The notes under the pieces were generated by a model. The model had not been told where the DNA came from and ran no database searches. It was given only the letters and a program-made list of their open reading frames with translations. The position numbers and the translations under genes are program-made. A DNA stretch of 34,439 bases from Octopus bimaculoides (taxonomy: Eukaryota): contig NC_068989.1 of the NCBI RefSeq assembly GCF_001194135.2, positions 23,005,717 through 23,040,155 on the forward strand, given 5' to 3'. Below are positions 25,479 through 34,439 of this stretch, in pieces (position 1 is the stretch's first letter; each line of letters opens with the position of its first letter).

Positions 25479-25510
25479 TGCATGTATGTATGTATGTATG
25501 TATGTATGTA

Positions 25511-26007
25511 GGTTCTCTTACTCTTTTTAATTTAGAGCAAATTTTGACCGGCCACCTACTTGGTAGCAAGGTTGGGAGGAGAAATATCTTATTTTAACCA
25601 TCATTCCTTACTTCTTAAGGTCTTACAGATTTTTATAGTTCTAGGTACCGTGATCGTTTGTAGCATATGAATTAAGGATAAGCATTCTCTCCCCCAAGAT
25701 CCCAAGTTCAGCCATACTTTGCTGCAGACAAATTGGCATGTAACCTGCTACCTAAATAATAATAATAGGTATAAAGCTGAAAGTGTTTCTTTGGTACTGG
25801 ATTTACAAACTCCTTATCAACTGTTCATAGACGTCCTCTTTCTCTTGTATTTTTCTCACCACATTTGTGTCCTGAGGGCAGCTGATTTCCACAACAGAAC
25901 ATATCACGATATCAGGCCGGTTGTATTTTAATTTGGTGGCTGTTTTAATTTTTAAGCTCTGCCAGTATTCTTTAGACACCTCAGTTTCAATATGGCCGAC
26001 TTCGTAA
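25511..26007 (-). mobile_element. RLE-type LINE, 5'-truncated copy 1, between (TACA)n tracts
   Basis: KYNRPDIVI-CSVVEISCPQD...EKEDVY...FSFIPIII...LGI...TIKICKTL, then a short 3' UTR. (TACA)n at 25481-25510 and 26008-26050. Confidence 0.85.
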
Positions 26008-26050
26008 GTATGCATGTATGTATGTATGTATGTATGTATGTATGTATGTA

Positions 26051-26380
26051 TATTCCGGGATGGTGTCCGGCGTGCTGAAAGACCACTGGGAGTGAGGCGC
26101 CCCTCAGGTTTTGTTGAAGCATGTCTCTAGGAGAAGGTCACTCTGATATAAAACCAAATATGCAGGGAATGGCATTGGACATTTTGGGAATCTTTGGTTT
26201 GTGCTAGAGATCACGGCGCTCCCACATCCCTGAGCCTGCGACTTATATTGGCACCAGACATCTTGCTCCAGCTTGTCTCTGGATAATGTCAATAAAGTGG
26301 AGAGGTTTTATGAGGTGTTGTGCAAGCCTCATTGGACCTAAAACTTAGCACAGGCATTGCCGACCTCTGCTTGACATGTG
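26051..26380 (+). mobile_element. Possible LINE (RTE-like) 5' UTR fragment
   Basis: CTCTAGGAGAAGGTCACTCTGATATAAAACC resembles a motif I recall from RTE 5' regions. No convincing protein motif. Confidence 0.3.
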
Positions 26381-27248
26381 CGTTTTTTTTTTCCTATATA
26401 TGTATGTATGTATGCATCATGTGCTACATCATGCTTATATAAACTGGAAAGGATAAATTATATTGTTTTCTGCACATGTATTTTCACCCTAGATCAGTCC
26501 TCGTTGAGCAGACCCATGATCAAAGACACTCGCCATGACAATATTGTTCATTTTCTTTATGTTTGTCTTTCCAACGTGCAGAAAACTCAGGTTCACATTG
26601 CCCAATGTACTATTTTTTAGGACAGCGAAGTGGATTTGGCTGCTATTTCTAGCACAGCAGACGACTACAGAAAAGCTCCATTGTTAGGCGTTATATGGTC
26701 AACTTGTCTATTCTCCAAATTTGCAGGTGATTAAGACAACGAATTTTCCAGACTTTCAATGAAACATCTTTGAATTTTTCCAGATGTATTCTTCTCCAAA
26801 CCATTCTCTGCTATTCTGTCATTCTCTTCACAAAATATGACCTATAATATATTCTCTCTCTCTCTTTCTCCCTCTCTCTCTCTTTCTCTCTCTCTAATAT
26901 TGTATGACATTGTACAGTGTCCAACTAGTCAGATTATCTTCAGTGTCTCGTCGGGAATAAATAATTACACCTTATGCATAAATATTATTTTGAGACATTT
27001 ATTTTGAATCAATCTCCTGTTTAATTACATTTCTTTATGTATAATACATCTCTCCCTCTATACATCCATACATAGATAAATACATATATATAATACATAT
27101 ATGCAAACTATATACACACACGCACACAAAGGTGAGCACATATGAGCAAAATGAGCAGGAACGCGAAACTAAGTCTTGTGATAATTTTCCAGCTTTAATA
27201 ATACACGCGCACGCGCATTCACACACACACACACACACACACACACAG

Positions 27249-27532
27249 TGTTGTATTGCCAATTGTCATGACGATACTTTTTTTTTTTACACTATAACCG
27301 TGTAGTAACAATAAAACATAACGAAGCAGGGTGAAGACAACGTAACAATCCAACAAACTCTCCACGAACTATGCGCGAACCAACAAACGATATTCCGACA
27401 AACTATCAAAACGGCACCTTACTACTTCCTGCGATTAACACCTTCTCTCTCCCGCCTCTCACTCAGACCGCTACTATTTATAGTCGTTCGGTCAAGTCTA
27501 TCCTCGCAGGAGGAGTCGTGACTCTCGATACA
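27249..27532 (-). repeat. 3' LTR (~284 bp) of a second Mag-like Gypsy copy
   Basis: TGTATC...ACAACA termini; aligns by eye with 6648-6935 (GACCGCTACTATTTATA, CAACGTAAC.ATCCAACAAACTC). Preceded on the minus strand by the purine tract AAAAGGTGAGA (27533-27543, PPT). Confidence 0.85.
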
Positions 27533-27599
27533 TCTCACCTTTTGAGATTTCGACTGCCGTAGGAAACGAAATTTATTTATTTATTTATTTATTTATTTA

Positions 27600-31690: not shown

Positions 31691-33172
31691 TTTCTCGTGA
31701 CTTACTTACTACTTCAAAACAATGCATCGTAAGGGGAAACTATTTTCATTTTCAGACTCCCCATATCTCAAAACATATATAATACTACACTTTTCGCNNN
31801 NNNNNNNNNNNNNNNNNNNNNNNNNNNNNNNNNNNNNNNNNNNNNNNNNNNNNNNNNNNNNNNNNNNNNNNNNNNNNNNNNNNNNNNNNNNNNNNNNNNN
31901 NNNNNNNNNNNNNNNNNNNNNNNNNNNNNNNNNNNNNNNNNNNNNNNNNNNNNNNNNNNNNNNNNNNNNNNNNNNNNNNNNNNNNNNNNNNNNNNNNNNN
32001 NNNNNNNNNNNNNNNNNNNNNNNNNNNNNNNNNNNNNNNNNNNNNNNNNNNNNNNNNNNNNNNNNNNNNNNNNNNNNNNNNNNNNNNNNNNNNNNNNNNN
32101 NNNNNNNNNNNNNNNNNNNNNNNNNNNNNNNNNNNNNNNNNNNNNNNNNNNNNNNNNNNNNNNNNNNNNNNNNNNNNNNNNNNNNNNNNNNNNNNNNNNN
32201 NNNNNNNNNNNNNNNNNNNNNNNNNNNNNNNNNNNNNNNNNNNNNNNNNNNNNNNNNNNNNNNNNNNNNNNNNNNNNNNNNNNNNNNNNNNNNNNNNNNN
32301 NNNNNNNNNNNNNNNNNNNNNNNNNNNNNNNNNNNNNNNNNNNNNNNNNNNNNNNNNNNNNNNNNNNNNNNNNNNNNNNNNNNNNNNNNNNNNNNNNNNN
32401 NNNNNNNNNNNNNNNNNNNNNNNNNNNNNNNNNNNNNNNNNNNNNNNNNNNNNNNNNNNNNNNNNNNNNNNNNNNNNNNNNNNNNNNNNNNNNNNNNNNN
32501 NNNNNNNNNNNNNNNNNNNNNNNNNNNNNNNNNNNNNNNNNNNNNNNNNNNNNNNNNNNNNNNNNNNNNNNNNNNNNNNNNNNNNNNNNNNNNNNNNNNN
32601 NNNNNNNNNNNNNNNNNNNNNNNNNNNNNNNNNNNNNNNNNNNNNNNNNNNNNNNNNNNNNNNNNNNNNNNNNNNNNNNNNNNNNNNNNNNNGTGTGTGT
32701 GTGTGTGTGTGTGGAACGCAGTCGCCATTAAAATTCTACTTTTAAGTTATATCTTTGAAAAGTTTCAAATACCACGGGATATAGGAAATCATTTATCCTT
32801 TTATTGCTTCACATTTAAATTTGTATATACTTATAAAATATTCAGATATTATTCAAGCTCTTATAAATTGGATTTTTAATGTTTGTAATGTTTGAGTATA
32901 TTTCGCATTTTATAAAAATTAACACTTTGACTCTGAGAGCAAAATGCCAGAATGTATTAGAAGTATGAACTAATTTAAACATAAAACGATGAAGGAAAGT
33001 ATTCTCTTTCAGTTTTGAAATTGCGTTTGAAACTCCATAGTGTCTTTTTTTTTTAAAAGATAGGATTTTGTAAATGAGAAACTTTCTACAAAGAGAAGCT
33101 TTTTCATGTATGTATGTATGTATGTATGTATGTATGTATGTATGTATGTATGTATGTATGTGTGTATGTGTG

Positions 33173-33275
33173 TCATTGTTCAGTTTCATTTCAAGATTTC
33201 TTGCCAATAGAGAAAGAACCGGTTTCTAACTTAGATCCAAGGCTCCTTCATTGAAATTTCAGCATCCTCGACAGG
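33173..33275. repeat. Unclassified ~100-bp element between two (TACA)n tracts
   Basis: Unique sequence bracketed by ATGT repeats at 33105-33172 and 33276-33335; non-coding. Confidence 0.4.
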
Positions 33276-33335
33276 GTATGTATGTATGTATGTATGTATG
33301 TATTTATGTATGTATGTATGTATGTATGTACGTAT

Positions 33336-33877
33336 GATTTCTCTCTGAGTTTTATTTAAGTTCTTGGGAGAGTTCAAGCTGTTCGCTAACAAAGCGACAA
33401 GACTTTATGAGTTAAGAAAGTTCTCGGTGTTTGTAAATATGCAGTTGATTGATGTGTTGGATGAATTGTCGATGCATTTACCCATGTGTGTGCATCACAT
33501 TAGAGTCTCAGATGGAGAAATTTTGGAATGTCTTACAAATGTTCAATGTGCCACTTATAGATTGTATTTGAAGGATCCGCGTCGGCTTCTTTTGCTTTTT
33601 TACCACGAAACCGAGTATTTCTAGGTTTTTACGCAAATTTTTTGGTACATAAATTAATGCACTTATGATAATAGGTACAAATGAGAATTCATAGGTAGGG
33701 TACAAGAGATGTAAGTTCCGAATTAATTCGCCATAAGTGTTCTCTTTTTCCTAGAATTTGATTGTAGTCACATCCGCTGGGCAGCTGACCTCTGCAATAG
33801 TGCATGATTTTTGTTCTCTGTCTCACAGAACAATATCAGGTCTGTTATGTTTGCAATGAATTGATGATTTTATTGGT
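33336..33877 (-). mobile_element. RLE-type LINE, 5'-truncated copy 2, between (TACA)n tracts
   Basis: CKHNRPDIVL*DREQKSCTIAEVSCPADV...EKENTYGELIRNLHLLYPTYEFSFVPIIISAL...LGF...SISGTLNICKTF*, then a 3' UTR. Confidence 0.88.
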
Positions 33878-33930
33878 GTGTATGTATGTATGTATGTATG
33901 TATGTATGTATGTAGCGTATGTATGTATGT

Positions 33931-34296
33931 TCCCTTCCATTTCTAATTATTTGAATTTTTCCTCTGAAGAAGGAGCTAGTTTTTAATAAAGATAGTTTTT
34001 AACAAAGCTTCATGTTTGAAATGTAGATAACAAAAGCAAATTCATATTTTAAACTTGAGAAAAGTCTTGCATATATTAACTGTTTTACTTACAGAATGTA
34101 TTTGTGATGTGAGGGTTAACTGGTCGATTTCTTTTTTTCTGGGGACCCCAGATTATCCAGATTATCACGATTATCACTTAGGTATTTATTTACTCACAAA
34201 ACCAAGCGCACCATAGAGAAGCTGAAGGTTTTGAGACAGTTTTCTGTATTGACCAACTTTCTCTTTGGTTTTAGAGGGACGTTCACATCAGCAGGG
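33931..34296 (-). mobile_element. RLE-type LINE, 5'-truncated copy 3, between (TACA)n tracts
   Basis: Across frameshifts: CPADVN, EKVGQY...NLQLLY, GALGFVSK, LG..EKEIDQL...IHSVSKTVNICKTFLKFKI*, then a 3' UTR ending at 33931. Confidence 0.8.
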
Positions 34297-34439
34297 CATA
34301 CATACATATTTATGTTTGTATGTATGTATGTATGTATGTATGTATGTAAGTAAGTATGTATGTATGTAAGTAAGTATGTATGTATGTATGCATGTATATA
34401 TGTATATATGATTGCATGTCTATTAACGTACATATATAT

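Follow-up and report, generated by a model that had tools for sequence, protein, structure and literature searches.

Described microsatellite-specific LINEs and the window

Several long interspersed nuclear elements (LINEs) insert into simple repeats. Among those which carry a restriction-like endonuclease (RLE), the following have been described: (i) Dong, of the R4 clade, which is specific for (TAA)n in Bombyx mori, Anopheles gambiae and the snail Biomphalaria glabrata (PMC3812793); (ii) some families of the HERO clade which, as far as the work of Kapitonov & Jurka (2014) is cited in PMC4640811, are microsatellite-specific in invertebrates; and (iii) Togen, a group of (TG)n-specific elements of fish related to NeSL/HERO (PMC4640811). 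Waldo, of the R1 clade, uses an apurinic/apyrimidinic endonuclease (APE) and is specific for (ACAY)n in Anopheles and an earwig; Mino, Kibi and Koshi are LINEs that target other repeats (PMC3812793). The present work concerns a stretch of 34,439 nucleotides (nt) from Octopus bimaculoides (contig NC_068989.1, positions 23,005,717 to 23,040,155; hereafter, the window), in which truncated copies of an RLE-bearing element without long terminal repeats (non-LTR) lie within (TACA)n arrays.

With regard to octopus genomes, Dong-R4 is an abundant group of RLE LINEs in RepeatMasker-based surveys (PMC13282606, PMC8967140, PMC9115989), and R2-Hero has been reported in cephalopods (PMC10294476, PMC13282606); none of these four reports describes the insertion target. 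The author of an earlier note on this DNA, made from its letters, knew of no TACA-specific element. This is correct only in part: the APE-type Waldo targets (ACAY)n (PMC3812793), and the literature searched, which did not extend to Repbase Reports, yielded no RLE element with (TACA)n or (TTAC)n as its described target. Searches for TACA/ACAT together with non-LTR elements returned only marker papers.

The best explanation for the window is that it holds four dead, 5'-truncated copies from diverged families of one RLE non-LTR lineage which, judging from sequence comparison, would insert specifically into (TACA)n in a fixed orientation (probability, about 0.8). The evidence comes from this window plus 23 loci of other assemblies.

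Copies and arrays in the window and in other assemblies

Coding fragments were searched for by tblastn of the window with database relatives as queries. Matches to the lineage were confined to three sites, all of them on the minus strand (Table 1): copy 1, matched at 25976-25701 (expectation value, E, 2e-21; 1e-22 to full-length relatives); copy 2, matched at 33876-33511 (E 4e-56, 73% identity to the relative P0001); and copy 3, matched at 34275-34045 (E 1e-8; 7e-6 in the search with full-length relatives). By tblastn, no further coding fragment of the lineage was found in the window and, with full-length relatives as queries, no remnant of its reverse transcriptase (RT); a weak match at 22945-23031 (E 0.1-0.3) was set aside as noise. 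Pfam gave no match for the peptides of these copies, nor for ORFs (open reading frames) in their neighbourhood. In the minus-strand translation, the motifs NRPDIV, E(V/I)SCPxD, EK and ICKTF can be seen: copies 1 and 2 retain NRPD ... E(V/I)SCP ... EK, and copy 3 the SCPAD...EK portion. All three coding copies are dead. Copy 2 has two in-frame stops; copy 1 has stops, one frameshift and a deletion of ~7 amino acids; and copy 3 has several frameshifts, its translation being frameshifted in consequence.

As the earlier note had read the junctions, each copy is 5'-truncated and nevertheless has sense-oriented (TACA)n at both ends; this applies to all copies in the window (4/4), including the fourth one described below. 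On the sense strand, each coding copy starts at the edge of an array and ends with a 3' untranslated region (3'UTR) of 90-171 nt, a purine-rich end and then (TACA)n. Copy 1 follows (TACA)9TGCATAC and ends in GAGAACC before (TACA)7; copy 2 follows (CATA)nCACACC and ends in GAAATCA before TACG(TACA)n; and copy 3 follows (CATA)n ... ATATGTATGTATG and ends in AGGGAA before (CATA)n. The inverted repeat units pointed out at the 5' junction of copy 3, then estimated at about 12 nt, are real and span 13 nt. Perfect sense-oriented TACA arrays make up 1.3% of the window, and, for a base taken at random, the probability of an array of this kind no more than 15 nt away on a given side is 0.019. For three independent 5' junctions, the probability of lying at arrays by chance is about 7e-6.

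Copies 2 and 3 stand head-to-tail in one array, as had been noticed before, and the fourth copy adds to this stack. Nucleotide comparison among the copies and against the remainder of the window yields a single similarity, a weak match of 44 nt, and the amino-acid identity of the copies with each other's nearest relatives is only about 40-50%. It follows that the copies were inserted independently and belong to different families, in agreement with the diverged subfamilies proposed previously.

Two runs of N (30507-30763 and 31798-32692) lie in the interval between copy 1 and the stack and reach neither: copy 1 and its arrays (25482-26051) end 4.4 kb before the first gap, and the stack of copies 2-4 (33106-34410) begins, with its first array, 413 nt past the second one. 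No claim made here relies on continuity or reading frame across these gaps, and scaffolding matters solely for the orientation of copy 1 relative to copies 2-4. Both gaps are directly followed by (GT)n runs (30764-30812 and 32693-32713) and, hence, the assembly broke in GT microsatellites.

Two further observations concern the arrays themselves. Upstream of copy 3, at 34340-34390 (minus strand), TACA units are mixed with TTAC, the repeat of the sister families described below; the window ends shortly afterwards, at 34439. Besides, a unique segment of 343 bp (26052-26394) is flanked on both sides by TACA arrays (26004-26051 and 26395-26414) which run in the same orientation. It shows no stem-loop match and no similarity to any of the sequences with which it was compared, and might represent one more insertion into what was originally a single array.

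Outside the window, 10 further 3' ends of elements run into (CATA)n (L003, L004, L005, L006, two in L009, two in L010, L021 and L022), with tails such as (CATA)9 in L004, (CATA)59 in L005, (CATA)29(ATAC)25 in L006 and (ACAT)28 in the full-length L021. At least six further 5' ends lie at the edge of a sense-oriented array (L006, L007, two in L009 and two in L010). At L006, the copy is truncated near amino acid 925; at L007, the ATG of a full-length open reading frame (ORF) is placed 7 nt past (ATAC)9. At L009, one copy begins at amino acid 300 directly after (TACA)n and a near-full-length copy (from about amino acid 1) begins within about 30 nt of (CATA)58, both of them forming a head-to-tail stack with a third copy. 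L010 contains a head-to-tail stack as well, with three copies that share the same truncation point (amino acid 323) and the same (CATA)7-AGA junction. The association of both ends with (TACA)n in one orientation is thus supported as a property of the lineage, and the targeting of (TACA)n proposed in the earlier note has gained these junctions in other assemblies. The contigs of P0001 (L002) and P0218 (L013) stop within the 3'UTR and are uninformative on tails.

Sister families are embedded in (TTAC)n in the same manner (L008, L011/L012, L016 and L018-L020). The element of L008 lies between (TTAC)28 and (CTTA)5; L011/L012 have (CTTA)18-27 upstream and a tail of 2.5 units; and L016 and L018-L020 have (CTTA)n tails. 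At L001, two tandem copies are found amid (CTTG)/(ACTT) arrays. In a neighbour-joining tree of the 135-amino-acid RLE domain, built without support values, the TACA families fall on several branches and most TTAC families are together.

Some arrays of the relatives contain additional sequences. At L006 2054-2285, five units of 12-13 nt, AATG(A)ATGTAAAG, are found in the TACA array just upstream of the truncated copy; they resemble the 3'-terminal sequence of the element and may be ultra-short abortive insertions of its 3' end. At L005 4142-4246, telomere-type (TTAGGG)10 and (GGTTAG)5 repeats are present about 400 nt beyond the (CATA)59 tail.

The 3'UTR stem-loop, the encoded protein and comparison with known elements

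The 3'UTRs of the relatives (90-1,050 nt) have a common order: stem-loop, purine-rich end and repeat tail. The stem-loop, present in all relatives about 30-50 nt before the tail, consists of GCCTT, a stem of 6 bp, a 5-nt YTGTT loop (mostly TTGTT) and CGGY. The sequence of the stem varies between families yet stays paired: in nine sequences, all six pairs change on both sides and 98% of the cells are paired, versus 30-50% when the 3' partners are slid. A covariance model (R1) was built from eleven loci of other organisms, without any sequence of the window, and the whole window was scanned with it on both strands and with no filters. Three matches were obtained, followed by noise at 8 bits or less. 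Two of them are located in the 3'UTRs of copies 1 and 2 (Table 1). The third one, at 33245-33215 of the minus strand (13.6 bits, E 0.069), is located in a 102-nt island between two arrays and, since both its strand and its spacing from the tail are those expected, the island (33275-33174) is an extremely 5'-truncated fourth copy. The 3'UTR of copy 3 has no significant match to R1 (7.9 bits). In consequence, the earlier view that the 3'UTRs look unalignable apart from a purine-rich end does not hold for copies 1 and 2, which have the stem-loop in common.

The model R1 also finds the 3'UTR of L011, which was outside the training set (E 3.5e-7), and in this way the short TTAC tail of L011 was spotted. 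Rfam, applied to 25300-34439, gave only sub-threshold matches to microRNA families, all of them to the microsatellites themselves. A second conserved motif, CCGTAGGCCGGTG, is found upstream of the stem-loop in the 3'UTR of several families, sometimes twice, and as CCTGTAGGCCAGG in L001. The 3'UTR of one TACA family (L005 2975-3330 and L010 5990-6330) contains about 330 nt of tandem units of 15-16 nt, GTCTATATTGTCTGG.

With respect to the protein, relatives were drawn from ENA/JGI assemblies of other organisms, in which they are many; all are unannotated except P0292, a protein of the octopod Argonauta hians. In full-length relatives, one ORF encodes about 1,085-1,160 amino acids, the intact element being about 4 kb long. 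Their domain order is as follows: (i) an N-terminal three-helix domain; (ii) the RT; (iii) a CCHC knuckle; and (iv) a PD-(D/E)xK RLE with which the protein ends. Pfam scans of three full-length relatives (P0055, P0131 and P0195) revealed no enzymatic domain other than RVT_1, which is also the only precomputed Pfam domain listed for the remaining ones. The earlier note had named an APE in full-length copies that insert at random as a finding that would speak against its proposal; in the three scanned proteins, no such domain (Exo_endo_phos) was found. The knuckle, CRLC-x7-H-x4-C, is present in P0007, P0015 and P0055, and upstream of P0014 in L006; it is seen in the relatives alone, the copies of the window being truncated downstream of its position.

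The best sequence matches of the RT in PDB are R2 proteins. For the RLE, a sequence profile against PDB found nothing and only the fold search succeeded. An AlphaFold model of the knuckle plus RLE of P0007 has an alpha-beta-beta-beta-alpha-beta core with a predicted local distance difference test (pLDDT) score above 85; its best matches in PDB are R2Tg, turtle R2 and R2Bm (E 2.7e-6 to 4.4e-5, probability 1.00), followed by viral cap-snatching PD-(D/E)xK nucleases. Since the best fold matches are R2 proteins, the C-terminal domain is assigned to the R2-type restriction-like endonucleases. The motifs of the three window fragments fit such a domain, and the earlier identification of these fragments as RLE C-termini is supported by the predicted structure, in which the best match to R2 proteins reaches E 2.7e-6. 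The N-terminal domain is conserved, comprises about 75 amino acids and is modelled as three helices (pLDDT about 90); in the relatives, it has no Pfam match and no cysteine-rich motif. With this model, the fold search reached E 1.8 at best, which is not significant; the weak matches were to Myb, SANT, homeodomain and helix-turn-helix domains. Because these matches are weak, a role of the domain in DNA binding is only a suggestion.

The lineage can now be compared with the systems named above. It resembles Dong, by description only, as an RLE LINE that is associated with one microsatellite in one orientation and leaves 5'-truncated copies. It differs from Dong in the target: that of Dong is (TAA)n, whereas the repeat here is (TACA)n or, in the sister families, (TTAC)n. 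A 5' flank of the (TAA)n repeat class targeted by Dong is found at L020 alone, as (ATA)17. Assignment to Dong proper was rejected on the basis of this difference in target. The likeness to HERO, again by description only, is that of invertebrate RLE LINEs of which some are microsatellite-specific. Dong-R4 and HERO are thus the two candidate clades; that Dong-R4 is the usual name for RLE LINEs in repeat annotations of octopus (PMC13282606) would be circumstantial evidence for the former. Togen shares the RLE and the microsatellite specificity but targets a dinucleotide repeat, and its hosts are vertebrates; among the relatives, a NeSL-type Ulp1 protease domain occurs in P0317 alone, which is very distant (25% identity, E 7e-23). 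Waldo has essentially the same repeat class as target, ACAT being one form of ACAY. But Waldo has an APE at its N-terminus, while the lineage has an RLE at its C-terminus and the scanned relatives yielded no APE domain; hence, membership of Waldo (R1 clade) was ruled out and the shared target would be convergence. R2 provides the best match for both the RT sequence and the fold of knuckle plus RLE (PDB 9dou, 9nl2/3 and 8gh6), and has a single ORF too. However, R2 inserts at one site of the 28S ribosomal DNA (rDNA), has N-terminal zinc-finger and Myb domains, and lacks a microsatellite tail, whereas the lineage has a short three-helix N-terminus without Pfam match and flanks of microsatellite, not of rDNA. 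Membership of the R2 clade was therefore ruled out, with neither zinc fingers nor an rDNA target.

Other repeats and remnants are present in the window. At 23285-24250 (plus strand), an intronless ORF encodes a Homer-like WH1/EVH1 domain (Pfam PF00568, E 4e-25); after it come a coiled-coil-like continuation full of stops and a short interspersed nuclear element (SINE). This ORF looks like a processed pseudogene. SINE-like copies with a B-box-like motif on the minus strand are found at ~21952-22110, 22517-22600, 24620-24790 and 30240-30390. At the 3' end, they pass into microsatellites, among them TACA-type arrays of either orientation; they have no match to the stem-loop model of the LINE, and ARAGORN calls no tRNA in them. 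Two minus-strand sequences are remnants of other mobile elements, namely an RT-like fragment ending in ...YLDDCFILW (29975-30244) and an ORF of 176 amino acids (27896-28426), neither of which has a Pfam match.

Table 1. Coordinates of the element copies, their parts and the adjoining arrays in the window, together with the sites of the second 3'UTR motif in relatives
Feature	Coordinates	Strand	Description or evidence
Array downstream of copy 1	25482-25510	minus	(TACA)7, directly adjoining; 3' tail or downstream half of target
Copy 1	25511-26007	minus	5'-truncated dead element; tblastn, translation, junctions
Copy 1, 3'UTR	25600-25511	minus	
Copy 1, stem-loop	25544-25574	minus	ACCTT-GCTACC-AAGTA-GGTGGC-CGGTC; R1 23.9 bits, E 2.3e-5
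Copy 1, stop codon	25603-25601	minus	
Copy 1, RLE coding remnant	26007-25604	minus	
Array upstream of copy 1	26008-26051	minus	(TACA)n, directly upstream of the truncated 5' end
Array downstream of unit 4	33106-33173	minus	(TACA)17, bottom of the stack
Unit 4 (copy 4)	33174-33275	minus	Extreme 5' truncation, 102 nt, 3'UTR end alone, between two arrays
Array between copy 2 and unit 4	33276-33336	minus	(TACA)n
Copy 2	33337-33877	minus	5'-truncated dead element; tblastn, translation
Copy 2, 3'UTR	33507-33337	minus	
Copy 2, stem-loop	33375-33405	minus	GTCTT-GTCGCT-TTGTT-AGCGAA-CAGCT; R1 22.9 bits, E 4.8e-5
Copy 2, stop codon	33510-33508	minus	
Copy 2, RLE coding remnant	33877-33511	minus	
Array between copy 3 and copy 2	33879-33930	minus	(TACA)n
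Copy 3	33931-34296	minus	Most decayed, 5'-truncated, begins within SCPAD motif; tblastn, frameshifted translation
Copy 3, 3'UTR	34041-33931	minus	
Copy 3, stop codon	34044-34042	minus	
Inverted repeat units at 5' junction of copy 3	34297-34309	minus	13 nt, ATATGTATGTATG on the sense strand
Array upstream of copy 3	34310-34410	minus	(TACA)n with interspersed TTAC units, top of the stack
Second motif, CCGTAGGCCGGTG/CCTGTAGGCCAGG	L004 2810-2830, 3025-3045; L006 ~3200; L013 ~1250; L001 ~8560, ~8750		

Alternative explanations, proposed mechanism and meaning

Several observations weigh against specific insertion into (TACA)n. At L005, the truncated 5' end of the element adjoins unique DNA, and no TACA precedes it. 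The full-length L021, L022, L016 and L017 have no array in the 80-200 nt upstream of the ATG, a distance in which 5'UTR and flank are not separable. At L020 (1-51), a 5'-truncated copy with a (CTTA)n tail has (ATA)17 as its 5' flank. The three copies of L010 with one and the same junction probably represent one event that was later duplicated. In addition, the tally of junctions comes from one window and 23 loci rather than from whole genomes, and the count of covarying pairs is based on segments selected by eye, so that the unbiased part of the evidence on the stem-loop is the search with the covariance model.

One alternative is that (TACA)n is no more than a 3' tail which the reverse transcriptase of the element makes or extends, with untargeted insertion and with upstream arrays that are coincidental or the tails of unrelated elements. 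Microsatellite tails are common among LINEs and SINEs, the SINE copies of the window also end in TACA/TGTA-type repeats, and L005 combines its long (CATA)59 tail with a 5' junction in unique DNA. Nevertheless, in 4/4 copies in the window and at least six elsewhere, the 5' end adjoins a sense-oriented array, for which the chance is about 0.02 per junction; and in the stacks, an upstream array that represents the tail of an older copy is a TACA array all the same, into which the younger copy has been inserted. This explanation is, then, improbable. An origin of the stacks in the tandem duplication, or the unequal crossing-over, of a unit of element plus array is favoured by L010, whose three copies look like one duplicated unit (or an artefact of a contig that is flagged as circular). 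It fits poorly with the window, in which copies 2, 3 and 4 differ in truncation point and have no nucleotide similarity, and copy 1 is a separate locus; the copies of L009, for their part, begin at amino acid 300 and at about amino acid 1. We consider it very improbable.

It would be more improbable still that the arrangement results from chance in a TACA-rich genome, or from an assembler that mis-joined contigs via shared microsatellites. In favour of this, the ACAT class accounts for 18 of the 31 perfect tetranucleotide arrays in the window, and the scaffold gaps are situated at microsatellites. Yet TACA arrays, in either orientation, represent only about 2.3% of the unmasked bases; every junction between array and element spans a few tens of bases, well within one read; and the same architecture appears in long-read contigs of other samples (L006 and L009).

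R2 protein binds structured RNA of the 3'UTR to start target-primed reverse transcription. If specific insertion into (TACA)n is accepted and the lineage works by analogy with R2, the following steps can be proposed: (i) the protein would bind the 3'UTR of its own RNA, with the stem-loop as the probable site; (ii) it would nick the (TGTA)n strand of a TACA array; (iii) the freed 3'-OH, able to pair with the (UACA)n tail of the RNA, would prime reverse transcription; and (iv) incomplete synthesis would give rise to 5' truncation. Later copies would then insert into the arrays that flank earlier ones and, in doing so, build head-to-tail stacks. The earlier note ascribed the cleavage of the repeat to this lineage; the specificity could lie in recognition of TACA by the RLE itself or by the N-terminal domain, in pairing of the RNA tail with the nicked repeat, or in protein and RNA together.

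The TACA families and their TTAC sister families have the same protein architecture and the same 3'UTR stem-loop. According to a broader proposal, the target would be set largely by the pairing of the 3' repeat tail of the RNA with the nicked microsatellite, a change in the tail would re-aim the element, as these sister families would suggest, and the elements would be a main engine that seeds and extends the very abundant ACAT-class microsatellites of cephalopod genomes. Taken as a whole, this proposal is doubtful.

Microsatellite-specific RLE LINEs were already established; what appears to be new here is the target repeat and, hence, the advance is incremental. In any case, site-specific RLE retrotransposons such as R2 are under development for DNA insertion and the choice of target is, in consequence, an active question. 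One protein architecture and one stem-loop combined with two tetranucleotide targets offer a natural comparison for finding out which of the two, protein or RNA tail, determines the target. As far as genome annotation is concerned, the lineage accounts for part of the landscape of TACA arrays in this cephalopod-like genome, and short unique islands within arrays, such as the 102-nt unit 4, can be extremely 5'-truncated copies of LINEs which homology searches miss.

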